Shown: piece by piece, positions 3,736-54,600 of the stretch
Numbering within the stretch: position 1 is the first letter of the stretch
How the letters are laid out: each line of letters begins with the position of its first letter
Assembly: GCF_044704955.1 (NCBI RefSeq)
Contig: NC_091977.1
Coordinates: 344,038,001-344,102,000 of the forward strand
Source: Pristiophorus japonicus
Lineage: Eukaryota
Direction: 5' to 3'
Length of the DNA stretch: 64,000 nt
Notes under the pieces: generated by a model
Seen by the model: the letters and a program-made list of their open reading frames with translations, nothing else
Database searches by the model: none
What the model was told of the DNA's origin: nothing
Program-made: the position numbers and the translations under genes

Positions 3736-4897
3736 GGGCCCAAGTTTCCACACGATAAAAAACGGGCGCCTCTCCGAGCTGGGCGCCCATTTTTCGTGAT
3801 TCTGGAGCGCCCTGCAGCTCCTTGTCTGGTGCGGCGCCCAGGGGGGCGGAGCCTACACTCGCGCCGATTTTGTAAGTGGGAGGGGGTGGGTACTATTTAA
3901 ATAGTTTTTTCCTGCCGGCAACACTGCACGTGCGCGTTGGAGCGTTCGCGCACACGCAGTGTGAAGGAAACATTGGCACTCGGCCATTTTTGTAGTTCTT
4001 TGTAGCTGTTTAATTTTTGAACATTTTTTAATAAAACCACATTGCCATCAGCACTGAGGCTTCCCTTCTCACTGTCTCCTACCCCCTCCCTCCCGTTCGC
4101 GGGAACGACGCTGAGCTGACTAAGGCTTCCACCTCAAGTGGAAGGCTGCTTGCTGCCTAGTTACTGCCTGCCTGCCCCTCACTCCCTCCCCTCCCGTTCG
4201 CGGGAACATCGCTGAGCTGACTGTAAGGCTTCCACCTCAAGTGGAAGGCTGCTTGCTGCCTGGTTACTGCCTGCCTGCCCCTCCCTTCCTCCCGTTCGCG
4301 GGAACGACGCTGAGCTGACTGTAAGGCTTCCACCTCAAGTGGAAGGCTGCTTGCTGCCTGGTTACTGCCTGCCTGCCCCTTCCTCCCGTTCGCGGGAACG
4401 ACGCCACATCGCTGAGCTGACTGAAGCACTTTCACACAGGTAGGAAGATGGTTTATTTAATCTTTTTTTTGCTTATAAATGTTTATTCAGGTTGGATTTA
4501 TTTGTATAATATTTGTAGAAGTATAAATAAGGATTTATTATAGAATTTAATGACTTTCCTTCCCCCCCCCCCCCCCCATCTCGTTCTGGATGCCTAATTT
4601 GTAACCTGTGCCTGATTTTTTAATGTGTAGAACAGGTTTTTTCAGTTCTACAAAAATCTTCACTTGCTTCATTCTACTTTAGTTTGGAGTACGTTTTCAC
4701 TGTGGAAACTTTCAAATCAGGCGTCAGTGGCCGGACACGCCCCCTTTTGAAGAAAAAATTCTGTTCCAAAGTGGAACTGTTCTACCTGACTAGAACTGCA
4801 GAAAAAAAAATGTGGAGAATTGCGATTTCTAAGATAGTCCGTTCTCCACCAGTTGCTCCTAAAAAATCAGGCGCAAATCATGTGGAAACTTGGGCCC
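3736..4897. mobile_element. Non-autonomous PIF/Harbinger-type MITE with internal minisatellite
   Basis: 21-bp TIRs GGGCCCAAGTTTCCACA(C/T)GAT (1 mismatch); 3-bp TSD CTT at 3733-3735 and 4898-4900; inserted between Gypsy gag and protease. Confidence 0.9.
4082..4428. repeat. Tandem repeat of about 95-100 bp (about 3.5 units) inside the MITE
   Basis: TCCCGTTCGCGGGAAC recurs at 4091, 4192, 4290 and 4384; full units also carry CTTCCACCTCAAGTGGAAG. Confidence 0.9.
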
Positions 4898-7294: not shown

Positions 7295-10200
7295 CTGGAT
7301 CATTGGCAGGACCGGAACCAATGTCCTAGGGGGAGTGTTTGCTAGTGCTGTTGGGGAGGAGTTAAACTAATATTGCAGGGGGATGGGAACCTATGCAGGG
7401 AGACAGAGGGAGACAAAAATGAGGCAAAAGCAAAAGACAGAAAGGAGATGAGGAAAAGTGGAGGGCAGAGAAACCCAAGGCAAAGAACAAAAAGGGCCAC
7501 TGTACAGCAAAATTCTAAAAGGACAAAGGGTGTTAAAAAAGCAAGCCTGAAGGCTTTGTGTCTTAATGCAAGGAGTATCCGCAATAAGGTGGATGAATTA
7601 ACTGTGCAAATAGATGTTAACAAATATGATGTGATTGGGATTACGGAGACGTAGCTCCAGGATGATCAGGGCTGGGAACTCAACATCCAGGGGTATTCAA
7701 CATTCAGGAAGGATAGAATAAAAGGAAAAGGAGGTAGGGTAGCATTGCTGGTTAAAGAGGAGATTAATGCAATAGTTAGGAAAGACATTAGCTTGGATGA
7801 TGTGGAATCTATATGGGTAGAGCTGCAGAACACTAAAGGGCAAAAATCGTTAGTGGGAATTGTGTACAGACCTCCAAACAGTAGTAGTGATGTTGGGGAG
7901 GGCATCAAACAGGAAATTAGGAGTACATGCAATAAAGGTAGAACAGTTATAATGGGTGACTTTAATATGCACATAGATTGGGCCAGCCAAACTGGAAGCA
8001 ATACGGTGGAGGAGGATTTCCTGGAGTGCATAAGGGATGGTTTTCTAGACCAATATGTCGAGGAACCAACTAGGGGGGAGGCCATCTTAGACTGGGTGTT
8101 GTGTAATGAGAGAGGATTAATTCGCAATCTCATTGTGCGAGGCTCCTTGGGGAAGAGTGACCATAATATGGTGGAATTCTGCATTAGGATGGAGAATGAA
8201 ACAGTTAATTCAGAGACCATGGTCCAGAAATTAAAGAAGGGTAACTTTGAAGGTATGAGGCATGAATTGGCTAAGATAGATTGGCTAATGATACTTAAGG
8301 GGTTGACTGTGGATTGGCAATGGCAGACATTTAGAGACCGCATGGATGAATTACAACAATTGTACATTCCTGTCTGGCGTAAAAATAAAAAAGGGAAGGT
8401 GGCTCAACCGTGGCTATCTCGGGAAATCAGGGATAGTATTAAAGCCAAGGAAATGGCATACAAATTGGCCAGAAATAGCAGCGAACCCGGGGACTGGGAG
8501 AAATTTAGAACTCAGCAGAGGAGGACAAAGGGTTTGATTAGGGCAGGGAAAATGGAGTACGAGAAGAAGCTTGCAGGGAACATTAAGGCGGATTGCAAAA
8601 GTTTCTATAGGTATGTAAAGAGAAAAAGGTTAGTAAAGACAAACGTAGGTCCCCTGCAGTCAGAATCAGGGGAAGTCATAACGGGGAACAAAGAAATGGC
8701 AGACCAATTGAACAAGTACTTTGGTTCAGTATTCACTAAGGAGGACACAAACAACCTTCCGGATATAAAAGTGGTCAGAGGGTCTAGTAAGGAGGAGGAA
8801 CTGAGGGAAATCTTTATTAGTCGGGAAATTGTGTTGGGGAAATTGGTGGGATTGAAGGCCGATAAATCCCCAGGGCCTGATGGACTGCATCCCAGAGTAC
8901 TTAAGGAGGTGGCCTTGGAAATAGCGGATGCATTGACAGTCATTTTCCAACATTCCATTGACTCTGGATCAGTTCCTATCGAGTGGAGGGTAGCCAATGT
9001 AACCCCACTTTTTAAAAAAGGAGGGAGAGAGAAAACAGGGAATTATAGACCGGTCAGCCTGACCTCAGTAGTGGGTAAAATGATGGAATCAATTATTAAG
9101 GATGTCATAGCAGCGCATTTGGAAAATGGTGACATGATAGGTCCAAGTCAGCATGGATTTGTGAAAGGGAGATCATGCTTGACAAATCTTCTGGAATTTT
9201 TTGAGGATGTTTCCAATAAAGTGGACAAAGGAGTACCAGTTGATGTGGTATATTTGGACTTTCAGAAGGCTTTCGACAAGGTGCCACACAGGAGATTAAT
9301 GTGCAAAGTTAAAGCACATGGGATTGGGGGTAGTGTGCTGACGTGGATTGAGAACTGGTTGTCAGACAGGAAGCAAAGAGTAGGAGTAAATGGGTACTTT
9401 TCGGAATGGCAGGCAGTGACTAGTGGGGTACCGCAGGGTTCTGTGCTGGGGCCCCAGTTGTTTACATTGTACATTAATGATTTAGACGAGGGGATTAAAT
9501 GTAGTATCTCCAAATTTGCGGATGACACTAAGTTGGGTGGCAGTGTGAGCTGCGAGGAGGATGCTATGAGGCTGCAGAGTGACTTGGATAGGTTAGGTGA
9601 GTGGGCAAATGCGTGGCAGATGAAGTATAATGTGGATAAATGTGAGGTTATCCACTTTGGTGGTAAAAACAGAGAGACAGACTATTATCTGAATGGTGAC
9701 AGATTAGGAAAAGGGAAGGTGCAACGAGACCTGGGTGTCATGGTACATCAGTCATTGAAGATTGGCATGCAGGTACAGCAGACGGTTAAGAAAGCAAATG
9801 GCATGTTGGCCTTCATAGCGAGGGGATTTGAGTACAGGGGCAGGGAGGTGTTGCTACAGTTGTACAGGGCCTTGGTGAGGCCACACCTGGAGTATTGTGT
9901 ACAGTTTTGGTCTCCTAACTTGAGGAAGGACATTCTTGCTATTGAGGGAGTGCAGCGAAGATTCACCAGACTGATTCCCGGGATGGTGGGACTGACCTAT
10001 CAAGAAAGACTGGATCAACTGGGCTTGTATTCACTGGAGTTCAGAAGAGTGAGAGGGGACCTCATAGAAACGTTTAAAATTCTGACGGGTTTGGACAGGT
10101 TGGATGCAGGAAGAATGTTCCCAATGTTGGGGAAGTCCAGAACCAGGGGTCACAGTCTAAGGATAAGGGGTAAGCCATTTAGGACCGAGATAAGGAGAAA

Positions 10201-10451
10201 CTTCTTCACCCAGAGAGTGGTGAACCTGTGGAATTCTCTACCACAGAAAGTAGTTGAGGCCAATTCACTAAATATATTCAAAAGGGAGTTAGATGAAGTC
10301 CTTACTACTTGGGGGATCAAGGGGTATGGCGAGAAAGCAGGAATGGGGTACTGAAGTTTCATGTTCAGCCATGAACTCATTGAATGGCGGTGCAGGCTAG
10401 AAGGGCTGAATGGCCTACTCCTGCACCTATTTTCTATGTTTCTATGTTTCT
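7295..10451 (+). mobile_element. Young 5'-truncated CR1 LINE (end of ORF1, ORF2, 3' tail)
   Basis: 14-bp TSD ATTGGTGAGCATGA (7281-7294 and 10452-10465); ORF1 end RTGTNVLGGVFASAVGEELN*; (TTTCTATG)n tail. Confidence 0.95.
7373..10354 (+). CDS. CR1 ORF2 (APE endonuclease plus reverse transcriptase), interrupted only by TAG at 7652-7654
   Basis: LNARSIRNK, GITET*, YRPP, MGDFN, SDH; RT motifs KSPGPDG, YLDFQKAFD, GVPQGSVLGP, FADD. The 869-aa ORF 7745-10354 is in frame with ORF 7373-7654. Confidence 0.9.
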
Positions 10452-12000: not shown

Positions 12001-12862
12001 GGCGCGCTTTTGGTGATACAGGTAGTTATATATCAATAATTGAACATATACAGCGGAGGATTTGGGTAAAACTGTATCCTTCAACTCTGAGAAACACCAC
12101 CAATGTATTACATTATTAAACTCTGTACGTAGGACCTGTGTTTCAATATAAAGCTTGCCTCTGTGGCAAAATACACTTACCTGTCCTAATAATTGTATCA
12201 GGACGGCACTGATAGGAATTTTCATGTGAAGGATGTCATGCATTGCCTGTCACAGATACACCCATGCTTGGTTTTATGCACATTAAGTGCCATGTTATAG
12301 TGAAGGTATATGGTAGTTTACTTTAACTATTTTAATCTCTTATTAACTTCTTTTAGATTTAGCATTTTTTTATTTTACTTATAAAACCCTTTTCCCTTTT
12401 TGGCCGCCTAGCCCTATTTTTTGCCATCTTGCTCATAATCTGCCTCCAGCCACCCAGAATATAACTATTCAAAAAAAAATTAACTTCTTGTCAGCCTTTT
12501 TCTCACTTTAATGTTTTAAGTGTGCATGTGTCTTTTGTATATGTCTTTGTCGGAATGGTTAATGCTGAATTTTGCTGTAAAAATGTATTTTACCTGGCAT
12601 TTGGGCCAAGTCTTCCTGGAAAACTAACGACCAGTTCACGGTGCACACCATTATGAATGCACAAATCGACCAAGTTCAGAGGATGAAAACTTGGTCAATT
12701 TATGCAAATGCATACAAATGGCATCTCACCCTGAGCACCCCTGTTATTTTTTAAGAACTTTCTGGATTTCCATATTAATTGACCATTAAACTCGCAGCTC
12801 ATCACTAACCTTGTGAGTACCCTTTTAACGACGGGATAATTGTTGATGCCATGCCACTCAGT

Positions 12863-13976
12863 GGGCCCAATTTTGGCCATGACTTGCATCAATTTTTTTG
12901 GAGTAAGTTTTTTCTGGCGTAAGTTTAAAAAAAATACAATTTTCCCCAAAATATTTGCTCCAGAGTAAGTCCGTTAGGTACGATCTTTTTTTTAGTTCAG
13001 TTTTTTTTTTCAAAAGGGGGCGTTCCCAGACACTTACGGCAGTTTTGGCCATTTATGCCATTTTGGCCAGCTAAAAGTTACTCTAAATCCACTTTGATCA
13101 GCATATGTGGCCAGCTCTGAAAAACCTTGTGGGCAGTTAACAAATCGGTGCAGGTAGGACCTGCAACAAGCACCAAGCAGCAAATATTCAATATAAAAGT
13201 TCAAATAACTACATAAAAATAGGGTAAACAATTGAACAACAATTAAAAAAAATTGTATTAAATCCTACCTTTAGTTGAAATCGGCCGGGGAAGGCAGCGG
13301 GTCGGGTCGGGAGAGTGGGGAGGGAGAGGAAAGGCTGGTCTCGGCAGCATCTTTATAAAGTAGAACTCAAACTGGTTTGTTGTTTGCCCCTCAGTTGACT
13401 TTCATAAAATGGGACTGCACATGGTCTTCATAGGCAGCTTGTCTGTTCTCTGGAAAGGTCCTCTGGCACACTGGACACTCGTAAACAAAGTGCTTCACAA
13501 CGTGCTGCTCGAAATCAGAGTCCTCCAGGTTGAGCATGAAGACGACCTCACACACTGGGCACTTTTGGCTGTCAATGATCTCCTCTTCGGTATCCTATGA
13601 ATTCCCCTTGCCATCCTGGCTCTGCACCAAGTCAATGCTTGCACCGGTCTGCGATCCTTCAATATCAGAGAGTGCCGCAGGCCACTCGGCCCGGGATAGG
13701 GACGGCGTGCTTCGGCCCCTCCCACACAGCGTCGGGCTGCGAGGAGCTACTGCACATGCGCGCACACTCGAGGTGCATGTGCAGAGGTCCCGGCACTGTT
13801 TTCAGCACCAGGACCTGGCTCCGCCCCCGAATCGAGTTGCCACGCTGCGCCACCATCGGGGAGAGGCTGGGGAGCGGCCAAAATGGGCCTGAAGATTTAT
13901 GCCGCTCTAATCGCTCCACAAAAGTGGCTGACCTTTGCTAAGTGCGCCAGAATTTGTACTGGCCAAAATTGGGCCC
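12863..13976 (-). mobile_element. Harbinger-type MITE carrying a captured host-gene fragment (Pack-type)
   Basis: Perfect 17-bp TIRs GGGCCCAATTTTGGCCA; both arms align in reverse to 26967-27791; TSD not preserved (AGT/ATC). Confidence 0.85.
13391..13678 (-). pseudogene. Captured C-terminal fragment of a CALCOCO2 (NDP52)/TAX1BP1-family gene: tandem UBZ-type C2H2 zinc fingers
   Basis: Minus-strand translation AALSDIEGSQTGASIDLVQSQDGKGNS*DTEEEIIDSQKCPVCEVVFMLNLEDSDFEQHVVKHFVYECPVCQRTFPENRQAAYEDHVQSHFMKVN*. Two CPxC..F..(F/Y)ExHVxxH units end at a stop; internal TAG at 13595-13597. Confidence 0.8.
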
Positions 13977-15219
13977 ATCCCCTCTTGCCCAGAAAGAGAA
14001 CAATTTAAACTGTTGAATGTAGTAAATTGTTACGACTTTTTAAAAATGTCAAATTTTGTATTTTTTTTTCTTACTTTTCTCTCCGTCTCTCGCTCTCTCT
14101 CAATCCAATCTTTCGTTTTCTTTTTCTGCACCTGATTTGACTCTAATTCACCCTCCTCCTCCTCTGTTTCTTTCTTGATCCTTAAATCTCTTTCTTTCAC
14201 AATTCGTAAATCTCATTGGTTAAAGAGTGATACTGTTGGTCTTGTCATTCACTGAGGTCCCAGATGCTCTGTTCCCCTTGCACTCCCAGCAAGTTATTAG
14301 TACAAATTATATTCGAACTAAAGGGTGCAGGAAAAAGTCTGTGCATGCAGCGAGGTGCACCACCCCAGCAAGATTTGACCCATTGATACCTGCTCATACT
14401 GTTGCTCCTAGAACCCAATACCCTTGTACTGAACATCACCAAAGTGTCCAGTTCTGCTGTGGTAACCGTCTTTATGATTTCCGAATGGGACCAGAATCAC
14501 AGCATTTTTAGCACTCATGTCCAGAGTCACAGAAAGTCACCAGGACTCATGAGCTCAGCACAGGCAGAGATGGAGACAATGGGCCTTTGGAGAGGGAGAG
14601 AAGTGGCTGTTGTAATTACCATATCAGGCACAGTTCAACTTCACTCCCACTCTTGATTTTAAAGTTTGGCCCTGCTCCTCTGTGTCGATCATATCGACTA
14701 GCAAATGCCAATTCCACTTTGTCCTGACAGTTACTAACCAATTTTCCATTGTTTTTGCAGTAGAATCTGTTAAACTGGCATCCATTCAAATTATTAGAAT
14801 TGTTTGTAAAATAAAATTGCCTGCTATTCGATCTTTAGAAATTTGTATTATGATAACATGGTTAAATGTACATTTATATTCAGTTTTAAAGCTCTAATAG
14901 AAGAAATGCAAAAATTCCCCTCCCTCTGAACACACCCAACTCCCCACTCCAGATCACCTCGCCTCCCCACTTCCCCCTTCTCTCTGGGCTTACTGTACTG
15001 GTATCACTCATTCAACTTGCTTGGGGCTCCACTCTAGTCTGGGGTCCTTCAACAGTCTTGGATTCTTTCACCCCTTCTCCTGCTCCCTGCTTCCAAGCCC
15101 TCTAACTTTTCTTTAGTCATTTACTCTCCCCATTTCGCTGGCCACGAATCATGCTCCTTCTTTCCCATGTACCCCTGTTTTTTTAACTCTGTTCCACATC
15201 CATCATCACAGTCCTCCTG

Positions 15220-16358
15220 GTCATGTGGGCAGAGCAGTGGCAAATGGAATTTAATTCAGAGAAGTGTGAGGGGATGCACTTTGGGAGGGCTAATAAGGAA
15301 AGGGTATACACATTAGTCAGTAGGTCACTTAATAGTGTAGATGAACAAAGGGACCTTGGAGTGTTTGTCCACAGATCCCTGAAAGAAGCAGGCCAGATGG
15401 TTAAGAAGGCATATGGAATGCTTGCCTTTATTGGTCAAGACATAGAATATAAGAGCAGGAAGGTTATGCTTAAATTGTATAATACTTTGGTTAGGCCACA
15501 GCTGGAGTACTGCGTGCAGTTCTGGTTGCCGTATTATAGGAAGGATGCGATTGCACTAGAGAGGGTGCAGAAGAGATTTACTAGGATGTTGCCTGGAATG
15601 GAGAATCTTAGTTATGAGGACAGATTTGATAGGCTGTGTTTGTTCTCATTGGAACAGAGCAGATTGAGAGGAGACCTCATTGAGGTGTACAAAATATTGA
15701 GGGGCCTGGACATAGTGAATAGTAAGGGCCTATTTCCATTGGTGGAGGGATCTATAACGAGGGGGCATAGTTTTAAGGTGATTGGTGGAAGGTTTAGAGG
15801 GGATTTGAAGGGGGGCTTCTTTACGCAGAGGGTTGTGGGGATCTGGAATTCACTACCTGAAAGAGTGGTGGATGCAGAAACCCTCACCACTTTTAAGAGA
15901 TGGTTGGATGGGCACTTAAAGTGCTGTAACCTGCAGGGTTACGGACCTCGAGCTGGTAATTGGGATTAGACTGGATGACTTTTTATTGGATGGCGCAGAT
16001 ATAATGGTAAGTATAGAATAGAATACGGCCAGCGTGATCTCCTGGACTAGTTTCGATCGCCAGGATGGGTCAGAGAGGAATTTTCCCAGATTTTTTCTCC
16101 CTAAATTGGCCTAGGTTTTTATCTGGTTTTTGCCTCTTCTAGGAGGGGTGGTGTGTAGAATGTTTCAGTATAAGGGGTGTCGCAGTTGTGTGAGGCGGAC
16201 TGGTTGGGCTGAGTGCTCTTTGCCTTCCCGTCATTGTTCATAGGTTTATATGTAACCTTTAGGGCTGCTGACCAAGGGCCGTGCGACTCTTTGTCGGCCA
16301 GCGCGGACACGATAAGGCGAAATGGCCGCCTTCTGCGCTGTAAATTTCTATGTTTCTA
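15220..16358 (+). mobile_element. 5'-truncated CR1 LINE (ORF2 C-terminus plus about 390-bp 3' UTR)
   Basis: WQMEFN..KC, LVRPQLEYCVQFW, RLRGDLIEVYK, FFTQRVV; tail TTTCTATGTTTCTA. Confidence 0.9.
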
Positions 16359-19300
16359 ACATCCCTGATTGAATTATCTTTTGCCCTCTAATTGTGCTTG
16401 ACCTGAAGACCACATTTGGCTTTGATGAAGTAATTAGAATAACTTCTGATGATGCTAATTGCGGTTTTCAAATGTTTACAATTTTACAGTTCTGGTTTGA
16501 ATTGCTAATTTTGTAGAAGATATTGCCACCTTTTGCAAGGTCTTTTCCTTCTAAGGCTTTGGCGCTGTGAGGATTGTTGATTATAGAATTTTATTTCGGC
16601 CTGATTTGCTCAAGGGGTGCCTGGAATAAACAGAAAATTCTGTCTGTGTTAATAAAGCTGCAGAGGCCTTTCTTGTTTGTTTTGTGCTGATTTGCATTCA
16701 TTTAGCTTCTTTGGTTCCTCTGTTCTTGCTCAGCTGTCATAATTGATGAAGCCTGGAAGTTGAAATGCTTTGTAATTTTCCATGACAAAAGGCACATTGC
16801 ACATTCATTGCACCTGCGTATCCTGTCGGCTCGTGTCGCTATCTCCAATTGGACCATTTTACGTAAAATGTTATGTAGCTTCCCGTACACTGAAGCCTTT
16901 GATGGTATTGTTTTCATGTGCTGCTTATTCAGATGTAAAATAAATATTATCTCAATTTTTTTTCTATAAAGCATTGCCTGATTCAGAAGTTTGAATGAGC
17001 ACGTTTGTGTGCAAATCTGCATATAATGCAAATTCAACTTAATACAAAATATTTAATATTATGCAGATAAGCTTTAATCCTTTGGCCCACGTGACTGCTG
17101 TCTGATTACGTTCAGCATCTGTAAGGAATACAGATATTCTGAATACTGAACATGTGTCTTGTGTTGTTGTGATCCTCTTAAGAGTCTCTATACTGGAAGC
17201 TTGTGACCAGTGAGCAGAATTTTGATGTACAATAGGCGGTGTTCTGTGTGCTTGTGTGAAACTGTTTTTCAGAATCTTTATGTCTGTGCCAAGTGGGTCA
17301 TCTGGAGCCAACGTGATTTCAGGTATTTGTTTTACAAACAGCAGGAGGCTTTTGCATAAAAGCCTGTAAGCAGAGAGACTTTTATTTTGAACTTATCCAA
17401 CAGCTGTTGGCTATTGCAGTGTGAAACTGCAGATCTGACTAGGTCACAGTGTTTTGTTTTATCTGTGTGGTGCACTGGAGATAGCGACACAGGCACCTAC
17501 AGTTACTCAGCTGCTTCAGGATCAGATTTGGTATTTCATTCTGCAATCAGGAGGTTTTGGAGAAAAATGGCCATGGATGATGGTGAGCGGCAACAAGAAA
17601 TATAGCCAGAGCATGTAGAGTCGCAGTATTCATACAGGACAAAGCTTATGCTATCACAGTTTTCATTTTTGCAGATTTATTCGGTATGATGAGAGGAGAG
17701 AAGTCAAGCTTGTGGTTTATTTTATTGAATTTTTATTGATTGGATTATTTCAGATTTGTTCTTGGAATACAACAATCAGAGAGCCTGCTTAGAATATATG
17801 TGCAATACTTCTAATTATTTATTGATAATATAAACATTGAAATCTTCTGATCTGCATTAGGTGTGTTAAATGTTCTTTTTGTTTCTTCATCTGAAGTATT
17901 CATGACTGCAGAAATGATAGATTTTTCTTGATAAAATTAATTTGGGTTTTAATTTTAATAGCAGTAAGAGATAACTTGACTATATTTATTGAAACTTATA
18001 GAATATAACATTTTTGAAGCATCAAAATTGTTCATGGAATCTATATTTTGTATGCAAATGAAATGTCTAATGAATGGAGCATTTGAGGAATTGTGATTTA
18101 TTGTGCAGTGAATTGATATTTTGGTCAAATGGGCTTATTTAATTAGGACTGCACGCTATCTGGGGAACTGGTTCAGTTGCAGAAATGGTCTGCACAGTCA
18201 AAATGTTGAATATCTTGGGTGATGAGAAATAGTATAAACAGAGAGCAATTATTGAAATGCATTTACAAGAAAAGTTAGGAAAAAAAGTGGATTGGTATCA
18301 AATTCCAGTAGCCAAAAGGTTAATAATTGATATGTTACACAAAACAACGATTTCTTTTTTAAAAAGCATAGCATTTTTTGGTACTAATTGTCATTTAATT
18401 CTATTCTCTCTTTGAACAACACACAATGCTCCTTGTTGTAACTGATTTAGGCCACATACAGCTGAAGGGCACTTGTCTAGATTTGTGTTGCAGCTTCCTA
18501 CGTCCTCCCAGAATTGGGTTTGGAGGATTTGCAGTTCTAAATTATGGCTATGGGTCCCTTGAGGGGGCCACATTGTTTGTGGAAATTCATCATTCATTAA
18601 TGCCAGGGGGGAAAAGGTGCACAGCGCATAGGGTGAGATGATATGTGCAGGAGCTTTGTGAAATGATGCCAGGAATGATTTGCAGCATTGGTGCAATTTA
18701 AGTGTGTGTTGCTATATCACCATAAAACCAGATGGCAGCTTGTCTGAGCTAAAAAAAACAGTTTGCTGGAAGTCTTTTGAATATTGATGTCGTAATGTCA
18801 ATGTGTTGAAAAAGTTGTTATGTCTGCATGGTAGAACCTTTTATTACAGCCATTTTCCAGCCAAATCTATTTGGTTAAGTGAGCTCAAAGAAATTGAAGG
18901 CACAAACTGAAGTAGTGTGAGGAAAAAATCAAAACAAGGGAGGAAATAACTGTAAACACAGGTACAATTGGATAAGTAATGAGTGTCAATGAATCACTGA
19001 AAAACATGAGAGCAAGGATTAAAGGATTAATTCAAAGGGTAAGGCTGACTGACGTAAGAGCATGATACTGTGGCTGTTCATAGTTCAGTGAGATACTTGT
19101 ATATTAAATTGAGGTGTTTGTATCTATATGCTGTTCAATGGCATCCTTGCAAAATAAAATAAGATTACATGGAAATAAGTGAATTTTTGGAGGTCTGGAA
19201 TTATATACTTAAAATACTTATTTTAATTTGTTAATGGGTCCATTTAATATATTTTACTATTTAGGAGATGATTTTGCAGATGAAAATCAGTGAGCAGCAG

Positions 19301-20042
19301 AAACACATAGTTCCAGAATCAATTTGATCTGAGTCTTTCACAACAAATTGTTTTGGAAATTGATGTATTCCAGATTTCTGCCACTTGTACAAAGGCCATA
19401 TTTTTTGTTTATAGCTTTTATGAATTAACAGTGGTAAGTGGCATTTTGGAGAGGTAATAACAGTTAATTACATTAAATTTTATGGGAGAGATATCCTATA
19501 TGCAGCAACATTTCAGTTTGTTAATGTATTGGTGTAATTAATTGTTCAGGGTTGCCAAAACAAGAAAGCTACGATTCGCCGTTTTCTGTGTTATTCTGTC
19601 GAGCACATTTCTACCAATCATCCAACCGTAGAAAGATCATAAGGTCAGAAGTAGGGCTCTTCGCTTATGATTGCACACTATTCAGCTCCAGTCGCAGTTC
19701 CTTAGATAATGAAGCAGTCCGTGCTTGGATATAGCAAGACCTGGTCAACATCCAGGCTTGGGTTGATAAGTGGCAAGTAACATTTGGGCCACATAAGTGC
19801 CAGGCAATGACCATCTCAAATAAAAGAGAGTCCAACCACCTCCCCATGACATTCAATGGCATCACCATCGCTGAACCCTCCACTTTCAACGTTCTGAGGG
19901 TTGCCGTTGACCAGAAACTCAACTGGACCAGCCACATAAATGGTTACAAGAGCAGGTCAAAGGCTGGGTATTCTGCAGTGAGTGGCTCACCACCTAATTC
20001 CCCAAAAAGTCGCCACCATCTACAAGGCACAAGCCAGGAGTG

Positions 20043-21640
20043 TTTTTTTTTTATTCGTTCATGGGATGTGGATATCGCTGGCAGGCCAGCATTTATTGCC
20101 TATCCATAATTGCTCTTGAGAAGGTAGTGGTGAGCTGCTGCTGCCTTGAACCGCTGCAGTCCGTGTGATGAAGATACTCCCATAGTGCTGTTAGGGAGGG
20201 AGTTCCAAGATTTTGACCCAGCGATGATGAAAGAACGGCAATCTACTTCCAAGTCAGGATGGTGTGTAACTTGGAGGTGATGGTATTCCCATGCGCCTGC
20301 TGCCCTTGTTCTTCTAGGTGGTAGAGGTCGTGGGTTTGGGAGGTGCTGCCGAAGAAGCCTTGGCGAGTTGCTGCAAGTGCGTCTTTTACACACTGCAGCT
20401 GCGGTGTGCTGGTGGTGGAGGGAGTGCATGTTTAAGGTGGTGGATTGGGTGCCAATCAAGCCTGAATGCTGTTGCAGCTGCACCCATCCAGGCAAGTGGG
20501 GAATATTCAATCACACTCCTGACTTGTGCCTTGCAGATGGTGGAAAGGCTTTGGGAGTCAGGAGGTAAGACACTCGCAGCAGAATACCCAGCCTCTGACC
20601 TGCTCTTGTTGCCACAGTATTTGTGACTGGTCCAGTTTAATTTCTGATCAATGATGATCTCCACGATGTTGATGGTGGGGGATTCGGCGATAGTAATGCC
20701 ATTGTATGTCAAAGGGCAGTGTTTAGACTCTCGCTTGTTGGAGAGTAGGCAAACACATGGCAGATGCAGTATAATGTGGATAAATGTGAAGTTATCCACT
20801 TTGGTAGGAAAAACATATGGACAAAGTATTACTTAAATGGTGATCGCTTGGAAAGTGTCGATGTACATAGGGACCTGGGTGTCCTTGTACACCAGTCATT
20901 GGAAGCAAACATGCAGGTGCAGCAAGCAGTTAGGAAGGCAAATGCAAGAGGAATTGAGTACAGGATCAAGGATGTCTTACTACAATTATATAGGGCCTTG
21001 GTGAGACCACACCTGGAATATTGTGTGCAGTTTTGGTCTCCTTACCTAAGAAAGGATATACTTGCCATAGAGGAAGTGCAGCGAAGGTTCACCAGACTGA
21101 TTCCTGGGATGGCAGGACTGTCGTATGAGGAAGGATTGGGTCGACTAGGCCTGTATTCACTAGAGTTTAGAAGGAGAGGGAATCTCATTGAAACGTATAA
21201 AATTCTGACTGGGTTGGATCGACTGGATGCGGGGAAGATGTTTCCCCTGGCTGGGAAGTCTAGAACAAGGGGTCGCAGTCTCAGGATACGGGGTAGGAAA
21301 TTTAAGACTGAGATGAGGAGAAATTTTTTCACTGAGTGGGTGGTGAACCTGTGGAATTCTCTACCACAGAAGGCTGTGGAGGCCAAGTCGCTGAATATAT
21401 TTAAGAAGGAGATAGATTTCTAGAAACAAAAGACATCAAGGAGTACGTGGAAAAAGTGGGATTTTCGTGTTGAGATAGAGGATCAGCCATGATCATATTG
21501 AATGGCCTACTACTGCTCCTATTTTTTATGTTTCTATGAGATAGTCATTGCCTGACACAAGTGTTGCGCGAATGTTACTTGCCACTTCTCAGACCAAGCC
21601 TGAATGCCGTCCAGGTCTTGCTGCATGATGCATGGACTGT
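20043..21640 (-). mobile_element. Same CR1/L2-group LINE family, antisense copy B, itself split by a CR1
   Basis: Begins with poly(T) plus the rc of the 3' tail; minus translation SNKRES..NGITIAESPTINI..DQKLNWTSH, KAQVRSVIEYSPLAWMGAA. Confidence 0.8.
20743..21537 (+). mobile_element. 5'-truncated CR1 LINE
   Basis: ORF 20764-21423 MQYNVDKCEVIHFG..LVRPHLEYCVQFW; TTTCTATG tail. Confidence 0.9.
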
Positions 21641-22736
21641 TTTGAGGATGTGATGGAATACTCTCCACTTGCTTATATAGGTGCAGCTGCAACAGCATTC
21701 AAGAAGTTCAACACCATCCAGGACAAAATTGTTTGCTTGATCAGCAGCACAACCATCATCTCAAATATCCACTCCCTCCATCACTGGCGCACTGGCTGCA
21801 GTGTACACTACCTGTAGGATAGACGACTGCAACTCACCAAGGCTTCTTCTGCCGCACCTCCCAAACCCGCCACCTCCACCATCTGGAAAGGACAAAGGCT
21901 GCAGGTGCATGGGAACACCATCACGTCCAAGTGCCATACCATCCTGACTTGGGCACATATCACGGTTCCGTCATGGTCACTAGGTCAAAATCCTGTAACT
22001 CCCTACTTGACTGCATTGTGGGAGTGCCTTCACCATGTGGACTGCAGCGGTTGAAGAAGGCGGCTCAGCGCCATGTTTTTGAGAGTAACTAGGTATGTGC
22101 AATAAATGCTGGCCTTGCCATCAATGTCTCCATCCCAAGAATGTATTAAAAAAAATTAGCCGTCTCAAAAGTTAAGATGGTGCATAAGGCAGCCTATGTG
22201 AGTTGTAAAGGGATGCCGATTGTCCTCCGCTTCACACATTTAAACTGAACAGCCAATTAGGATTTTGACAAATATTAGAAAGTGATAGCATAGACAAAAT
22301 AATCTGGTCTTCAACATTGGCGGAAAGTACTAGTGAAGTTTGGAAGGCATCAGTGCCAATCTCAACAAAAAAAATATGCATTTGTAAAGTGTATTTTAAT
22401 GTAATATAGATGAAAACAGACTGATTTTTTTTAATGCTAGTGGAATTAGGAGAGGTGACCAAATGCCTGGCTGAAAATGTTCATTTTGAGGAAGTTTTAA
22501 AAGATGGAGAGAGATTTAGCAAGGTGAAGCATTTTAGAGTGAAGGCAGAGTGCCAAACCTAGACAACTGAAAACTCTGCCATCAAGTGAGGAATGAATGC
22601 CAGGGGAGCCAAAATTCTGATGAGTGGACGAGGTTGCAGGGGTTAGGTAGGGTTGAGGCCATGGTGACATTTGTAAAGGACAGGGATTTTGATGCTTTGA
22701 GGGGGAAGTTGGAGCTTGTGTAGTTCATTGGTTTCT

Positions 22737-24101
22737 GCACGAAAGATGCAGGGAACAGCACCAATCCTTTTGTACATGGCCTTCTTTGACCTTACAAAGG
22801 CCTTTGACACTGTCACCCACGAGGGACTATGGAGCGGCATCCTCCGTTTTGGCCGCCCCCAAAAGTTCGTAACCATTCTTCGCCTGCTCCACGACGACAT
22901 GCAAGCCGTGATCCTGACCAATAGATCCATTACAGACCCAATCCACGTCCGGACCGGGCTCAAGCAGGGCTGCGTCATCGCATCAACTCTCTTCTCAATC
23001 TTCCTTGCCGCAATTCTCCACCTCACGCTCAACAAGCTTCCCCGCTGGAGTGTAACTAAATTACAGAACCAGTGGGAACCTGTTCAACCTTCGTCGTCTC
23101 CAGGCCAGATCCAAGATCGTCCCAACCTCTGTCGTTGAACTACAGTACACGGACGACCCATGCTTCTGCGCCCATTCAGAGACTGAACTCCAAGTCATAG
23201 TCAGCATCTTCACTGAGGCGTATGAAAACATAGGCCTTACACTAAACATCCGTAAGACAAAGGTCCTCCACCAGCCTGACCCCGCCACACAGCACTACCC
23301 CCCCCAGTCATCAAGATCCACAGCACGGCACTGGACAACATGGACCACTTTCCATACCTCGGGAGTCTATTATCAACAAGGGCAGACATCGACGACGAGA
23401 TTCAACACCGCCTCCAGTGCGCCAGCGCAGCCTTCGGCCGCCTGGAGAAGAGAGTGTTCGAAGATCAGGCCCTCAAATCTGCCACCAAACTCATGGTCTA
23501 CAGGGCTGTAGTGATGCCCGCCCTCCTGTATGGCTCAGAGACGTGGACCATGTATAGTAGACACCTCAAATCGTTGGAGAAATACCACCAATGATGTCTC
23601 TGCAAGATCCTGCAAATCCCCTGGGAGGACAGACGCACCAACATAAATGTTCGCGATCAGGCCAACATCGAAGCACTGACCACACTTGACCAGCTCCACT
23701 GGGCGGGCCACATTGTTCGCATGCCTGACACAAGACTCCCAAGGCAAGCGCTCTACTCTGAACTCCTACACGGCAAGCGAGCCCAAGGTGGGCAGAGGAA
23801 ATGTTTCACAGACACCCTCAAAGCCTCCTTGATCAAATGCAACATCCCCACCGACACCTGGGAGTCCCTGGCCAAAGACCGCCCTAAGTGGAGGAAGAGC
23901 ATCCAGTAGGGCGCTGAGCACCTCGAGTCTCGTCGCCGAGAGCATGCAGAAAACAAGCGCAGGCAGCGGAAGGAGCGTGCGGCAAACTAGACTCACCACC
24001 CACCCTTTCCTTCAACGACATTAGATTATTTAGTCACCTAAGAACTCATTTTTAGAATGGAAACAAGTCTTCCTCGATTTCGAGAGACTGCCTATGATGA
24101 T
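22737..24101 (+). mobile_element. RTE-clade LINE 3' part (decayed RT)
   Basis: FDLTKAFDTV, GLKQGCV, YTDD, FPYLGS, LLYGSETW, MPDTRLP; 3' end ..CTGCCTATGATGAT. Confidence 0.9.
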
Positions 24102-25585
24102 CCGACACACCAACCTCATAGCCCAAAAAAGGTTGTTCAATTTTTGTTACTGCGGGCTGTGTGTCTTCATACCTGTGATTGAGGTATTGCTGCAACATTG
24201 AGACCAAAGTCTAATAACTGTCAATTATCTGCTGATTGCCACTTCGATTATGGTAGATCATGGAGGTTCCACTGTAAGGTAAAGTAATGCATTCAAGACA
24301 TTGGTTTAATGCCTGTGCTATTTTGGGTCATCTAACCGATTCACTTCCTACTGATTCACTCTTGACTTGCTTTGTGAAAATTAGAAGCAATCAAAATGAC
24401 AGCATAAGTTGTATGAAACACAAAGCTATAATGTTGAAGTGATCAAACAAGAGTATAATAGGAACTTACCAATATTGGTAGGTGTAATTATTTAGGGTGA
24501 ACTGCTCAGGCTAAAAAATAATGCAGTTTGATTGAAAATGTGTTTGTTTTAGCCATGTTTTTAATTGTTTTCAACCTTGCTGACAAATTTGTTTAAAATC
24601 ATTGTGATCTTTTTCAACTCATCACCACTTCATCCTAAGAGTTGCCACCTTTTGGAGTTGTTATTGGTCATGTCCTAGCTGTTTCAGATTAACATTTTTC
24701 TTTTTTATAATGAGCCTTTGTATAAGTTTGGTTAGACAAATGAGGTGCTGGTTGTGTTTATGCAAGAAATTGATGGGACATTCATGGATTGATTGCATAA
24801 TTTCATATTTGTTCTTGGAATACAACAATCTGCAAGCCTGCTTAGAATGTATGTGCAGTACTTCTAATTATTTATTGGTAATGCAAGCTTTTCCTGCATG
24901 CTGATCCCTGACTTCTCTTCTGACTGAAGTGTTCCATTTTTTAATTATTCTTTCCCAGGTTAATTTAATTCAGGGCATTATTGATGAATTACATTTTTTC
25001 TTTAGTGAATTTCCTTCAGTCACTTGGCGTTGTTAGTATCCTCGTGGCCCTCAATTCATTTACCACTTCACAAAAAACTATTGTGTAAACCTAATTTCAA
25101 ACAAGACTGAAATTAACTTCTAACGCCTTCCCAATAATCCCATAAACATGCTATCTCTTGGAAGGATTGGAGTATGCAGTTCTGATGTGCCTGTGTTTTT
25201 ATTAAGCATTTTTTGATCTGAGTTCAATAGATTGTGGCATTGAACAATTCATATGTGCTGAATAAATGCTAAGGCTGCAGGCTGAGATTATTGTGACTGC
25301 AGAAGTTGTTCAATGCTAAGTAACCTCCAGACTATTTCTCACTTACGCTACATAATTTTTCTTCCCTCTCGTATTCAAGCTACAATGTTTATCTCGCGTG
25401 TACTCGTAACCCTCTAGCACCTGTGCAAGTCTGGGCATTGATCATGGTTGGGTGGGGGTGGCCGGAGGGCACAACAACTGAACCTGATTGTCCTTGCCAG
25501 GTGCTCATATACATACATTATTTGAAAAGCACAATTGGCATCAGGAACCCTGGCTTTTCTTTTGTTTCTTATCCAAAGAATCAAT

Positions 25586-26290
25586 GGGGCAGAAATTCAA
25601 CCTCGTTTCGCCCATTTTTGAGCATAACAAGGGGAAAACTTGCTGCCGTATTCGATCGGGCGATAGGTGCTGATTGTTTATCTTTAATCCTTGTCCTCTG
25701 CTGGTTGTAGGACCTCGATTACAAAATTGGAGTACAAGTGGGTTGAGCTTCTGGAAGTCCAGGGATGGAGTCATAGACACTCCCCTACCCATCATAGACT
25801 CCACCCATTTGTACTGGGACTTAAGCTGGCATCCAGCAGTCCTTAAGGGTTGGGAAAACAGCCCCAGAATTGTTTTTTTTTGGTGTAGTTGGAAGGAACA
25901 AGATTGCTTCTCCTGGCTCCACAAAAGAACTGCAGGCTAGAACTTGTCCCCTTCGGCATTGCCTCGCCCCTCCCTACTGGACCTATCTAAAGGAATATAG
26001 GAATAAGAGTACACCATTCTTTGCAGGGTACTCACTTACTGCCCTGTTCTGGCAGCTTTTCGTGGGCGGTTTCCTCGGCAGTTTGTATGGGTCCACCGCT
26101 GAGGCAAAACTTCGATCCTGGCAGTTTTCTCGGTGGTGCTTGTGGGCGGTTTGCTACCCAGCAGTCTTTTCAAGATGTGGGCGGAACTCTTTTTTTTTTA
26201 AAAAAAGGAAACTTTCGCCGGGTGGTTTTTCATCAAAAAACAGCCGTACTGCTGTGAAAACTGCTGAAAATGAAGGCGAAAGTCGAGCCC
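25586..26290. mobile_element. Probable Harbinger-type MITE remnant(s)
   Basis: GGG-initiated ends (GGGGCAGAAATTC and rc GGGCTCGACTTTC, weak match); CpG-rich subterminal GGGCGG repeats; abuts a truncated CR1. Confidence 0.4.
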
Positions 26291-26966
26291 GAAGAATCAT
26301 ATCCACATCTTCTGCCTCCAGACACAGATTTCCTTTGTGGTCTCTAATAGGCCCCACTCTTTCTCTAGTTATCCTCTTGCTCTCAATGTATTTATAAAAC
26401 ATCTTTGGATTTTCCCTGATTTTACTTGCCAACATTCTTTCATGCTCTCTTTGCTTTCCTGATATCTTTTTTAATTACACCCCTGCGCTTCTTATACTCC
26501 TCTAGCATCTCTGCAGTATTGAAGTCTCGGAATCTGTCATCCAGTGGGGTGCTAGATTTGTTAGCCCCATCTTTTTTTTTATAAAGAGAACATGCTTGCT
26601 CTGTACTCTCAGGATCTCCTCCTTGAATGCCTCTCACTTCTCTGACACTGATTTACCATCAAGTAGCCGTTTCATATTCCCCTTGTCCAAATCCCATCTC
26701 AGCTTAGCGAAATTGGCTTTACCCCAATTGAGAACTTTTTTTCCTGGTCCACCTTTGTCCTTTTCCGTAACTGCCCTGAATCTTAATGAATTATGATCAC
26801 TAGCACCAAAATGCTCTCCCACTGAAGCCCCTTCATTCCCCAAAATCAAGTCCAGAATCGCCCCCTCCCTTGTTAGGCTTGTTTCATACTAGCTAAAGAA
26901 TTTCTACTGAATGCATTTTAGGAATTCTGCACGATACCATTCACACTGCTTTTTTTCCCAGTTAAT

Positions 26967-27791
26967 GGGCTCAAAATGGGCCCATGCCGATCTTTGGCGT
27001 ACTCACCTGAGTTGATCAGCTTTTCTACATTTCCAAGCGCGCCAAAAAAAGATGTCCTGACTTTGACCACTGTCCGGCCTCTTCCAGGTCTTCGTGCAGC
27101 GTGGCCAGTCGAGTCGGGGGCAGAGCCAGTGTCCCGCGCTGAAAACAGTGCTGGAACGTCTGCACATACGCGTTGGAGCAGTAGCTCCTTGCTCCCAGCA
27201 TCTCTGTGTGCATCCCGCCCCAATCCCAGGCCGAGTGGCCAAATATTAAACCGACCCAACTCTCTTGCCTCGTCACGGGCTTTTACCCTTGTGATATCGA
27301 AGTCACCCTCCTGAGAAATCGCGAGCCAATCACTGACACGGAATCCAGTGGCATTCTACTACTTGTATTTTTGTAGTTTAAGCTTCCATGAATGCTTCTG
27401 TTGTATATTAAATTAACGTTGCGGAAGTTTGTCATATAGCTGTTTGATCCTATTCACATTCCTTAGTCAAGTCATTAAGTTCTGCTGGCCTCCGATGTAC
27501 CTACCTGCGCTGATTTCTTCACTCTCCTCAAGGGTTTTCACAAGTGGCCACATATGCTGGCCTAAGTTAGTTTGGAGTAACTATTAACTGGCCAAAGTGG
27601 CTTAACTGGCCAAAATGGGCGTAGGTGGCTGGTAACGCCCCCTTTTGGAAAAGAAACAAAACTAAAATAATCCTAACCAACTCACTTACACTGGCAGAAA
27701 TTGAATGTGTAAAATGTGGATTTTTAAGATACTCCAGAAAAATCAAGTTACTCCAAAAAAAACGGAGCAACTCCTGGCCAATTTTGAGCCC
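26967..27791 (+). mobile_element. Harbinger-type MITE carrying a captured MHC class I-like fragment (Pack-type)
   Basis: TIRs GGGCTCAAAAT(G/T)GGCC; 3-bp TSD AAT (26964-26966 and 27792-27794); arms homologous to 12863-13976. Confidence 0.9.
27242..27358 (+). pseudogene. Captured Ig C1-set fragment, most like an MHC class I alpha-3 domain
   Basis: Translates NIKPTQLSCLVTGFYPCDIEVTLLRNREPITDTESSGIL: the C1-set signature LxCxxxGFYPxDIxVT followed by a ..SGIL(P)-type strand. Confidence 0.8.
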
Positions 27792-51400: not shown

Positions 51401-51975
51401 CTTGGCTCCCCTGCAACCACGTTTCTGTAATGGCCTACAAATCATACCCATTTGTAATGATTTGTGCCGTAAAGTCATTTACTTTATTTTGAATGCTGCG
51501 TGCGTTTAGGTAGAGTGTTTTAATACTAGTTTTTAAACCATGATTTTTAGTTTTGACCCCTCCTGCAGCCCCTTTATATTCATACATATTGTCCCTTCCT
51601 ATCACTTTGTGGTTTACACTTACCCCAGTGCTATTCTGCTCTGTTGCCTCCTGCCTTTTGCATTCTTTCTTGGGGTCCTGTTCATCTGAGCTCTCACCCA
51701 CTCTAACTAGCTCAGAGCTCTCTCCTGGGTTCCGAATACTCCTTGCATTGAGGCACCGAGCTTTCATGCTTGCCTTTTTTATTACCCTTTGACCCTTTAG
51801 AATTTTGCTGTACAGTGGCCCTTTTTGTTTTTTGCCTTGGGTTTCTCTGCCTTCCACTTTTACTCATCTCCTTTCTGTCTTTTGCTTTTGTCTCCATTTT
51901 GTTTCCCTCTGTCTCCCTGCATTGGTTCCCATCCCCCTGCCATATTAGTTTAACTGCTCCCCAATAGCACTAGCA
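48476..51975 (-). mobile_element. Young chimeric CR1 LINE (ORF1 end plus ORF2; longest ORF 49392-51416)
   Basis: EN motifs YRPP, MGDFN, SDH; RT motifs YLDFQKAFD, PQGSVLGP, FADD; two LNARSI motifs at the N-terminus; rc tail CATAAGAA. Confidence 0.9.
49173..49314 (+). mobile_element. Short (about 140 bp) tRNA-headed SINE, internally deleted relative of the 34862-37410 SINE
   Basis: A box GGCTCAGTGGTTAG, B box GGTTCAAATCC, GCTGACACTCC..GCACTGTCGGAGG joined directly to GCGCTATAT; interrupts CR1 ORF2. Confidence 0.75.
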
Positions 51976-54425: not shown

Positions 54426-54600
54426 GGTGGGGGGGGGGGGCGGGGAAAGGAGGAGGAAGAGAAAAAGAGGTGCGGGGAGGGGTGGGGAGAGGAGGAGGGG
54501 AGAGAGAGAGAGAGGGTGGGGGGAGGAGGAGAGAGACTGGGGGAGGGGAAGAGAGAGGTGGGGGGCAGGGGTGGGGTGGGATGGAGAGGAGAGAGAGAGA
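54426..54600 (+). repeat. G/A-rich low-complexity purine tract
   Basis: Multiple G-runs and (GA)n. Confidence 0.85.

Follow-up and report, generated by a model that had tools for sequence, protein, structure and literature searches.

The window analysed here, a stretch of 64,000 nt from the genome of Pristiophorus japonicus (NC_091977.1), contains elements with host coding sequence between transposon-like ends. These raise the question of whether they are gene-capturing members of a mobile family, and whether such a family takes up host genes at a fixed site. A preliminary description had proposed both: a PIF/Harbinger 'pack' family with GGGC-type terminal inverted repeats (TIRs) and colinear arms, enclosing UBZ zinc fingers in one element and an Ig C1 domain in the other, each in sense with the left arm, and with capture apparently fixed at the motif GGCCGAGTGGCC. 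We found that e1 and e2 (listed below) are amplifying Pack-type TIR elements of a hugely abundant family, but GGCCGAGTGGCC is not the capture junction of that family. Our preferred reading, to which we give a probability of roughly 0.65, is that of an abundant family of PIF/Harbinger-type miniature elements (MITEs), with e1 and e2 as Pack-type derivatives whose interiors were filled by repair. Three elements are considered:

12863–13976, minus strand: e1, a TIR element, 1114 bp long, complete and non-autonomous (16/16 TIR at 12863–12878 and 13961–13976)
26967–27791, plus strand: e2, a TIR element, 825 bp long, complete and non-autonomous (15/16 TIR, AAT target site duplication)
3736–4897, plus strand: e3, a distant relative of e1 and e2 (17/17 TIR, CTT target site duplication)

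The TIRs of all three elements start with GGGC, as had been described for e1 and e2; the TIR of e1 is GGGCCCAATTTTGGCC. The target site duplications (TSDs) of e2 and e3 are perfect and 3 bp long, and a clean TSD is absent at e1 (flanks GAT and ACT in element orientation). PIF/Harbinger elements have a 3-bp TSD, typically TWA, and TIRs that commonly begin GG(G/C); autonomous members encode a PIF-type DDE transposase and a Myb/SANT-like protein. The GGGC ends agree with the proposed superfamily; the TSDs of e2 and e3 have the expected length, but neither is TWA. The family is probably of non-autonomous PIF/Harbinger type, an assignment made from TIRs and TSDs for which a transposase would be the proof. 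The ten largest ORFs of the window are LINE or Gypsy-like, with no autonomous partner among them, and Rfam gave no family match anywhere in the window. Tourist/mPing-type MITEs are short, non-autonomous and very numerous, with TIRs that start with GG and TSDs of 3 bp; their canonical TSD is TWA, in contrast to the AAT and CTT observed here (and none at e1), and we know of no host coding sequence in ordinary MITEs. The third element, e3, has a GC block, a hairpin (DNA fold z = -3.5) and ACGCCCCCTTTTG in common with e1 and e2, and its interior is a minisatellite (98-bp unit, 3.3 copies, 4084–4404), as had been described.

The homology between e1 and e2 is confined to arms of ~300 bp, which are colinear as proposed, and the interiors are unrelated. 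The arms of e1 are as follows:

13661–13976, minus strand: left arm of e1 at family level (alignment with e2 and contig depth)
12863–13158, minus strand: right arm of e1 (75% identity to e2 over 300 bp)

The left arms are ~78% identical, and the pairwise homology stops directly after GGCCGAGTGGCC (at 13680 in e1 and 27240 in e2), a motif whose only two occurrences in the window are these sites; homology of the right arms sets in at CCTACCTGC (13158 in e1 and 27500 in e2). Contents of the e1 left arm are a GGGGGCGGAGCC block, a hairpin with a 10-bp stem (CTGCACATGC...GCATGTGCAG), the GGCCGAGTGGCC motif at 13680–13691 and then 19 more nt, and the right arm contains TGGCCAAAA subterminal repeats and a ACGCCCCCTTTTG block. 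None of the LINE regions of the window match the arms or the 21-mer around GGCCGAGTGGCC.

For the interiors we used public contigs of the same species (DNA runs X1 and X3, and further runs X5 and X6) together with PDB and Pfam matches. The interior of e1 has two parts:

13351–13660, minus strand: e1 cargo, 310 nt from the 3' end of a CALCOCO/TAX1BP1-type autophagy-receptor transcript (contig alignment, PDB and Pfam UBZ matches)
13159–13350, minus strand: rest of the e1 interior, no source matched (summed depth 2–4.7k, the same as for the cargo)

The e1 cargo runs from ~89 codons before the stop codon to 40 nt into the 3' UTR. It matches the UBZ pair of TAX1BP1/NDP52 (PDB 5aas, E 2.5e-11; Pfam Zn-C2H2_12), in sense with the left arm as described, and is 51% identical to the C-terminus of a SKICH protein (P0001). 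Gapless cargo alignments were obtained with high-depth contigs (X6 rec31, X5 rec22 and X5 rec20); X6 rec31, for example, aligns over 13351–13660 with 28 mismatches. The parent-like X5/X6 sequence is at least 2.37 kb long, reaches ~1.66 kb upstream and 0.4 kb downstream of the cargo, departs from e1 at 13660 and 13351, and fits the mRNA of a ~530-aa SKICH protein. Eight letters specific to the parent-like contigs have zero depth in the DNA runs X1 and X3, from which the parent locus was not recovered. Of the 26 differences that separate e1 from the parent-like contig, 14 are private to e1, among them an in-frame TAG at 13595–13597 (nearly all other contigs have G at 13597), which speaks to the age of e1 as a copy. 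The cargo is cut at both ends, like filler DNA, with neither poly(A) nor a flanking direct repeat. The rest of the interior consists, in order, of a C-rich stretch, AAAG/GTAGGA at 13269/13268, an AT-rich 108 nt and TTGCAG/GT; the post-cargo interiors of e1, e2 and e3 are no more similar to one another than shuffled sequences are.

The interior of e2 (27241–27499) contains a shorter cargo of ~105 nt:

27248–27352, plus strand: e2 cargo, part of a C1-set Ig domain (KPTQLSCLVTGFYPCDIEVTLLRNREPITDTESSG) and closest to B2M (PDB and Pfam matches)

Its best match is B2M (PDB, E 6e-9), with a Pfam C1-set match at E 2.3e-7, which confirms the Ig C1 fragment and its sense orientation to the left arm. 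The cargo begins mid-domain, and hence not at an exon edge. In both e1 and e2, then, the ends of one TIR family lie around a host (non-TE) interior, as in Pack-TIR elements.

The family is hugely abundant: 11.9k and 11.5k contigs match it in the two DNA runs (~12,000 per run). 135–147 contigs per DNA run with unrelated flanks abut the terminus at 12862/12863 exactly, the flanks of cargo-bearing copies being inseparable here from those of the whole family; the flank consensus at 12862 ends in AA, with an agreement of only 0.37. Joints at single-copy depth skip ~1130 nt (from 12848–12860 to 13979–13993) and look like paralogous empty sites at e1. Each site of the e1 cargo is covered by 7–26 distinct DNA contigs with a summed depth of 1–3k, as compared with a depth of ~11 for the 100%-identical contig of the e1 locus itself; summed contig depth is not true copy number, and copy figures derived from it are rough. 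Three contigs from other copies (X1 rec3, X1 rec4 and X3 rec11) bridge from the cargo through the interior into the right arm. These data support an e1-type cargo-bearing derivative that is multi-copy and has therefore transposed after capture, in agreement with the mobile pack family of the preliminary description. The elements readable in full are e1, e2 and e3, and captures are counted here among these three. Protein searches for further family copies, made with the e1 cargo peptide and with a 112-aa ORF that runs across the left arm of e2, gave no match, which a length filter and probably the lack of this genome's ORFs in the collection account for. In public collections, the left-core pattern had zero matches in metagenome_contigs or genome_contigs, and the right-arm pattern had zero matches in viral_contigs. 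Ten metagenome contigs with the right-arm pattern do not belong to this family: they share only a 24-nt motif, which lies inside an unrelated repeat of ~130–140-bp units.

Contig depth also locates the capture junction of e1. At least 62 distinct contigs run on past GGCCGAGTGGCC, with arm-level depth to ~13661, so that the 19 nt past the motif (13679–13661) are common to many other family copies. Position depth in the left arm is 13–54k as far as 13676 (62 contigs, summed depth 15.4k at this position) and is down to 1–1.8k by 13646 (13640–13646). Parent-like contigs align only from 13660. On entering the right arm, depth climbs from 2.2k (13167–13209) to 38.5k (13124–13166). Of the claim that host sequence begins right after GGCCGAGTGGCC, one part stands, namely that the homology between e1 and e2 ends there; the e1 cargo, however, starts 19 nt later, and C1-set homology in e2 is detectable from 27248, 7 nt past the motif. 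The motif is thus not a fixed capture site, since family homology passes through it; the coincidence of e1 and e2 at GGCCGAGTGGCC is a property of that pair, set by the e2 breakpoint. What is supported is a shared slot region: left breakpoints of e1 and e2 differ by 12–19 nt, and the right ones lie no more than a few nt apart. A structural hotspot at this slot is possible, because close breakpoints at both ends would be hard to obtain from independent random breaks.

Under the preferred reading, members of the family would have conserved ~300-bp arms around a replaceable interior, and a break or excision gap inside a member would have been repaired with foreign sequence copied or ligated between the arms. 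The fill of e1 would comprise 310 nt from inside a CALCOCO-type autophagy-receptor transcript and ~190 nt without matched source, and that of e2 ~105 nt of a B2M/MHC-like C1-set domain plus ~150 nt without matched source. The e1-type derivative presumably kept working ends and later multiplied, very roughly to the order of 10^2 copies. Both elements may come from one progenitor made of the two arms, and repair templated on thousands of paralogous copies would tend to switch where the homology between copies ends; in our view, this common progenitor and switching at homology ends are why the interiors of both elements begin and end within the same short stretches.

The closeness of those boundaries is also what speaks for a cassette with a sequence-defined capture point, i.e. 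a break or template-switch point at or beside GGCCGAGTGGCC (formed, for example, by a small hairpin) through which host genes are sampled repeatedly, an alternative that we consider unlikely. The edges of the e1 slot are palindromic (GAGTGGCC-TGC-GGCACTC at 13687–13670 and GCAGGT-CCT-ACCTGC at 13164–13150) and e2 keeps the outer halves only, and a ~3.5-fold drop in depth from 13713 to 13676 suggests that some copies may end near GGCCGAGTGGCC. But the palindromes were observed post hoc and in two elements, and the GGCCGAGTGGCC hairpin is no more stable than shuffled sequence (z = -0.48) and weaker still with the letter that most of the family has at 13676. There is no peak of loose ends at 13680 among the best-supported peaks. 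The contigs that pass the motif at arm-level depth, with parent-derived cargo following 19 nt later, argue against it most directly.

A route through RNA, in which the left arm acts as promoter and first exon, and chimeric or spliced transcripts, cDNA or retrocopies serve as repair templates, would make the cargo spliced mRNA in sense orientation that ends at a conserved splice donor. Both cargos are indeed in sense orientation, and the 310-nt cargo of e1 aligns colinearly with RNA-like contigs of high depth, although whether X5 and X6 are RNA or DNA runs is not on record. A DNA contig at single-copy depth (X1 rec5 / X3 rec12) matches only 13351–13502 and is unlike e1 beyond both sides, as an exon would be (edge GAGCAG/CAC); this one contig hints that the e1 cargo may cross an exon junction, but it is only 86% identical and has none of the parent-specific letters, and so is not the parent locus. 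Past 13351 the parent-like contig reads GTAGTAACC, which resembles a 5' splice site, and AG/GTAGGA follows the interior in both e1 and e3; the GTAGG donor, however, is absent in e2, and a splice joint 13269>13160 is absent among the joints listed. The e2 cargo begins mid-exon whichever C1 domain is taken, which excludes an exon–exon junction on its left, and the GC block may equally be a site for the transposase or its Myb partner. Taken together, we regard an RNA or cDNA origin of this kind as highly doubtful.

Independent LINE-mediated retrocopies, or other nested insertions that landed in MITE copies, are barely credible: reverse-transcriptase genes of LINE and LTR type are plentiful in the window and the cargo may lack introns, but poly(A) and direct repeats are absent around both interiors, the e1 cargo has no mRNA 3' end (it stops 40 nt past the stop codon, and the parent-like contig continues for at least 400 nt), and the entire e1 interior is multi-copy along with the arms.

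Returning to the reading of e1 and e2 as repair-filled Pack-type derivatives, we compared them with known systems. Multi-copy Pack-TIRs are known in animals (PMC8277862); like e1 and e2, they are DNA transposons whose TIR arms enclose host sequence. Some of them are transcribed and present in several copies, and gap filling or template switching has been proposed as their origin. The main text of that survey names no Harbinger/PIF or shark case, whereas the present carrier, a Harbinger-like MITE, is extremely numerous and its cargo may be spliced; by design, the survey (Tan et al. 2021) discarded intron-less cargo of multi-exon parents (PMC8277862). In maize and rice, a search for Pack-TYPE elements took in Harbinger-PIF along with other superfamilies (Gisby & Catoni 2022, PMC8903248). 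Plant Pack-MULE/Pack-TYPE elements are likewise non-autonomous and carry and amplify gene fragments (PMC8903248); e1 and e2 differ in their vertebrate host, and e1 in its short 3'-end cargo. Turmoil-1, a Caenorhabditis elegans element of the Harbinger superfamily, also carries protein-coding fragments of host genes (PMC2572040), but is autonomous and 5 kb long, with the fragments inside 760-bp ITRs, and is present as one complete copy plus fragments (PMC2572040), in contrast to the ~1-kb MITEs e1 and e2, with their cargo in the middle and many-fold amplification. Our literature search turned up no earlier account of the e1/e2 family, nor of Harbinger Pack elements from any vertebrate, cartilaginous fish included.

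As it stands, the case is a good example of a known phenomenon, with no new mechanism. In plants, exon shuffling by Pack-type DNA transposons is well recognised, and the cargo there, as far as is known, usually retains its introns because capture takes place at the DNA level; in animals, only a few hundred cases have been catalogued. With e1 and e2, an extremely numerous vertebrate MITE family would be seen to spread autophagy-receptor and MHC-type fragments in ~100 or more copies, and thereby to supply decoy transcripts, small-RNA templates or new exons on a sizeable scale. A bolder proposal, that Harbinger-type MITEs repeatedly take up spliced host mRNA, in sense, in one palindrome-bounded slot behind a promoter-like arm, with each derivative amplified to hundreds and immune/autophagy genes (B2M/MHC-I, NDP52-like) perhaps over-represented, seems to us quite doubtful. 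The preliminary description had pointed out that both cargos are immunity-related, but with n=2 such a bias is unsupported. If the cargo were spliced and the slot recurrent, this would point to RNA- or cDNA-templated repair inside DNA transposons, a class that the main animal survey filtered out.

With regard to the arms themselves, we also considered them as long degenerate inverted repeats, which found no support beyond the TIRs and the TTTTGGCCAG-type subterminal repeats.

All three of the non-autonomous TIR elements (MITEs) claimed in the preliminary description, e1, e2 and e3, are confirmed by their TIRs; e2 and e3 have TSDs, but e1 is without a clean one. Assignment of the three elements to Harbinger is provisional: the TIRs and the 3-bp TSDs fit, but the TSDs are not TWA.

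TIR elements of the window, and GGGGGCG cores in two of them
12863-13976, minus strand: e1; perfect TIRs of 16 nt (16/16; GGGCCCAATTTTGGCC), no clean TSD
26967-27791: e2; TIRs 15/16, TSD AAT
3736-4897: e3; TIRs 17/17, TSD CTT
13822-13835 and 13011-13023: GGGGGCG cores of e1
27116-27129 and 27634-27647: GGGGGCG cores of e2

BLAST and MAFFT comparisons identify two arms common to e1 and e2: a left arm (78% identity across the alignable core), in which homology stops exactly past GGCCGAGTGGCC (at 13680 in e1 and 27240 in e2), and a right arm of 300 bp at 75% identity, starting with CCTACCTGC (at 13158 in e1 and 27500 in e2). The GGCCGAGTGGCC motif occurs twice in the whole window, only in e1 and e2. 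Judged by its sequence, e3 is a distant relative, sharing with e1 and e2 the GGGGGCGGAGCC block, a hairpin, the block ACGCCCCCTTTTG and the right-arm start; its interior is a minisatellite (98-bp x 3.3). Unlike e2, both e1 and e3 have a donor-like AG|GTAGGA. A search across the window for additional family members found none beyond these three. In e1 and e2 alike, the GGGGGCG cores lie ~145-160 nt inside either end and are inverted relative to each other, in the context TCGGGGGCGGAGCC at the left and CAAAAGGGGGCGTT as read from the right; this ‘GC box’ may be a subterminal binding site, not a promoter element.

The interiors of e1 and e2 carry pieces of host genes (cargos). Translation of the e1 interior gives the C-terminal ubiquitin-binding zinc-finger (UBZ) pair of the TAX1BP1/NDP52 (CALCOCO) family (PDB 5aas, E 2.5e-11; Pfam Zn-C2H2_12). 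Its top match among 1.8 billion representative proteins is P0001, a protein of 529 aa with a SKICH domain, a coiled coil and the same two zinc fingers at its end, the last 68 residues being 51% identical to the e1 cargo. The e2 interior encodes ~35 residues of a C1-set Ig domain, beginning mid-domain. Its nearest match is B2M (E 6e-9); since an MHC class I chain scores just below, we call this cargo B2M/MHC-like (its ‘IEVTLLRN’ has Leu at the position held by Trp in MHC alpha-3 domains). The preliminary description was largely correct in what it observed; the proposed immune-gene theme still has n=2.

Four public sequencing runs of the same species were aligned to 12780-14060 with a likeness threshold of at least 80%. 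X1 and X3 are short-read DNA unitigs from one sample. The kind of the two small runs X5 and X6 is not on record; we take them to be RNA because their gene-like single contigs have depths of 129-334 versus 3-16 for repeated-arm unitigs, the opposite of what is expected for DNA.

The family of e1-type arms is enormous, with ~11,900 (X1) and ~11,500 (X3) contigs aligned to the e1 region. In each DNA run the match of 135-147 contigs breaks off precisely at 12862, with unrelated sequence beyond (consensus agreement 0.37), which marks this terminus as the end of a mobile element inserted at many sites. Several contigs at single-copy depth link 12848-12860 directly to 13979-13993; these joints resemble paralogous empty sites in the repeat hosting e1. 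Depth is 13-54k at left-arm positions (with a spike of ~800k at 13775-13828) and 5k to ~150k at single right-arm positions (bin means up to 440k); it is 1-4.7k throughout the interior (13167-13639), far below the arms. The contig perfectly matching the e1 locus itself has a depth of ~11, there are 7-26 distinct DNA contigs per cargo site, and contigs of other copies with 8-12% mismatches (X1 rec3, X1 rec4 and X3 rec11) run from the cargo through the e1-specific interior into the right arm. Clearly, the cargo-bearing e1 subfamily has been amplified and its interior is multi-copy. Summed depth divided by 11 suggests ~10^2 cargo-bearing copies and at least 10^3 e1-like arms, rough figures, as summed depth is no substitute for a copy number. 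Over the outer 80 nt of the e1 left arm (13898-13976) summed depth is only 0.5-0.9k, less than for the cargo (~2k) and far less than for the opposite terminus (~180k): either conservation differs greatly between the two ends of the family or the left end of e1 is subfamily-specific.

Homologous arms, host-gene interiors and this amplification support the earlier Pack-type reading. A catalogue of Pack-TIRs from 100 animal genomes includes multi-copy ones, and the origin proposed for Pack-TIRs is gap filling or template switching with microhomology as the guide (PMC8277862); the text of that survey names neither Harbinger nor sharks, and its pipeline discarded intron-less cargo of multi-exon parents (PMC8277862). 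A Pack-TYPE survey in maize and rice included Harbinger-PIF among its superfamilies (PMC8903248), and Turmoil-1, a Harbinger element of C. elegans, carries two gene fragments (PMC2572040). Like animal Pack-TIRs, e1 and e2 are TIR elements with host cargo, the e1 type being multi-copy; given these precedents, they belong to an already known kind of element.

Gene-like contigs of X5 and X6 align to e1 without gaps, and only within 13351-13660, which therefore is the true e1 cargo: X6 rec31 (715 nt) spans it with 28 mismatches, and X5 rec22 (1806 nt) and X5 rec20 were also found, the latter covering it in part. These contigs reach ~1.66 kb upstream and 0.4 kb downstream of the cargo in sequence unlike e1, a layout expected for the mRNA of a ~530 aa protein. 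Of 26 differences that separate e1 from the parent-like contig, 14 are private to e1 (including a T giving an in-frame TAG at 13595-13597), thus the subfamily consensus is ~96-97% identical to the parent-like sequence. The eight letters that mark the parent-like contigs (13390, 13446, 13482-13487, 13583, 13612 and 13621) have zero depth in both X1 and X3, so the DNA of that sample shows no trace of the presumed parent gene; a different individual, a filter or a paralogue is a possible cause.

The proposal that GGCCGAGTGGCC (13691-13680 in e1; 27229-27240 in e2) is a fixed capture site is not supported in that form. At 13676, four nt beyond the motif, 62 distinct contigs still align (depth 15.4k), most with another letter and therefore derived from other copies, and the e1 cargo starts 19 nt past the motif, the intervening TGCGGCACTCTCTGATATT being family sequence. 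Depth has fallen to 1-1.8k by 13640-13646, and the mean of 7.4k in a 43-nt bin is consistent with a boundary near 13662; the left depth drop in e1 is not located at the motif. Among the six best-supported loose-end peaks of each run, beyond which there are 1,096 more, none lies at 13680. The exact stop of e1/e2 homology past the motif is real, but it is set by the breakpoint of e2 only.

What stands is a shared slot between the arms. On the left the e1 breakpoint lies 19 nt further in than that of e2 (12 nt if the AAATATT of e2 is counted as family sequence), and at the right edge the family-level depth step lies within a few nt of the e1/e2 boundary (13158-13166); therefore two independent interiors fill nearly the same slot. 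One arm+arm MITE progenitor could have given both elements, the interior being replaced later; repair copying from thousands of paralogous templates would tend to fail or switch where inter-copy homology ends. A shared slot is expected under either, and is unlikely to come from random breaks in a long progenitor. The e1 slot edges have small palindromes, noticed post hoc (GAGTGGCC-TGC-GGCACTC and GCAGGT-CCT-ACCTGC), of which e2 retains just the outer halves; folding of the left palindrome does not exceed that of shuffled controls, and it is weakened by the letter that most of the family has at 13676.

A spliced origin of the e1 cargo is plausible. X1 rec5 (682 nt, depth 14.6; found again as X3 rec12) is a DNA contig at single-copy depth whose match is confined to 13351-13502, with unlike sequence on its two sides (449 nt and 82 nt); the match ends at GAGCAG|CAC, as for an exon edge, and the RNA-like contigs pass uninterrupted through 13502. 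Past 13351 a parent-like contig reads GTAGTAACC, similar to a 5' splice site. Against splicing, X1 rec5 is just 86% identical and lacks the eight parent-specific letters. It is unlikely that the interiors are ordinary nested retrocopies, as both are devoid of poly(A) tails and of direct repeats at their flanks, and the e1 cargo has no mRNA 3' end.

A 24-nt block of the right arm, CTGG.AACGCCCCCTTTTGGAAAA(A), is found exactly in ten metagenome contigs (Ga0209679_*, Ga0209260_*), within an unrelated tandem repeat from another eukaryote (unit ~130-140 bp; GTCACGTGACCCTGG...). Outside this block these contigs have no likeness to the e1-type family; it could be chance or a shared protein-binding site.

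The LINE regions of the window do not match the arms or the motif region. The facing inverted repeats listed below resemble oppositely oriented pairs of an interspersed repeat.

Other features of the window
7745-10354, plus strand: LINE-type ORF (endonuclease and reverse-transcriptase domains), 869 aa without a stop
49392-51416, minus strand: LINE-type ORF (same domains), 674 aa
2501-3055, plus strand: LINE-type ORF (same class), RT fragment
43694-47275, minus strand: Gypsy-like LTR-retroelement pol region by ORF domains; three successive ORFs with protease, RT/RNase H and integrase domains
19733-22115 and 57383-62056: long diverged facing inverted repeats; pieces of 50-170 nt, 71-92% complementary, spacing 0.5-3.4 kb
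54431-54571: GA/G-rich imperfect microsatellite-like array, periods 23-42
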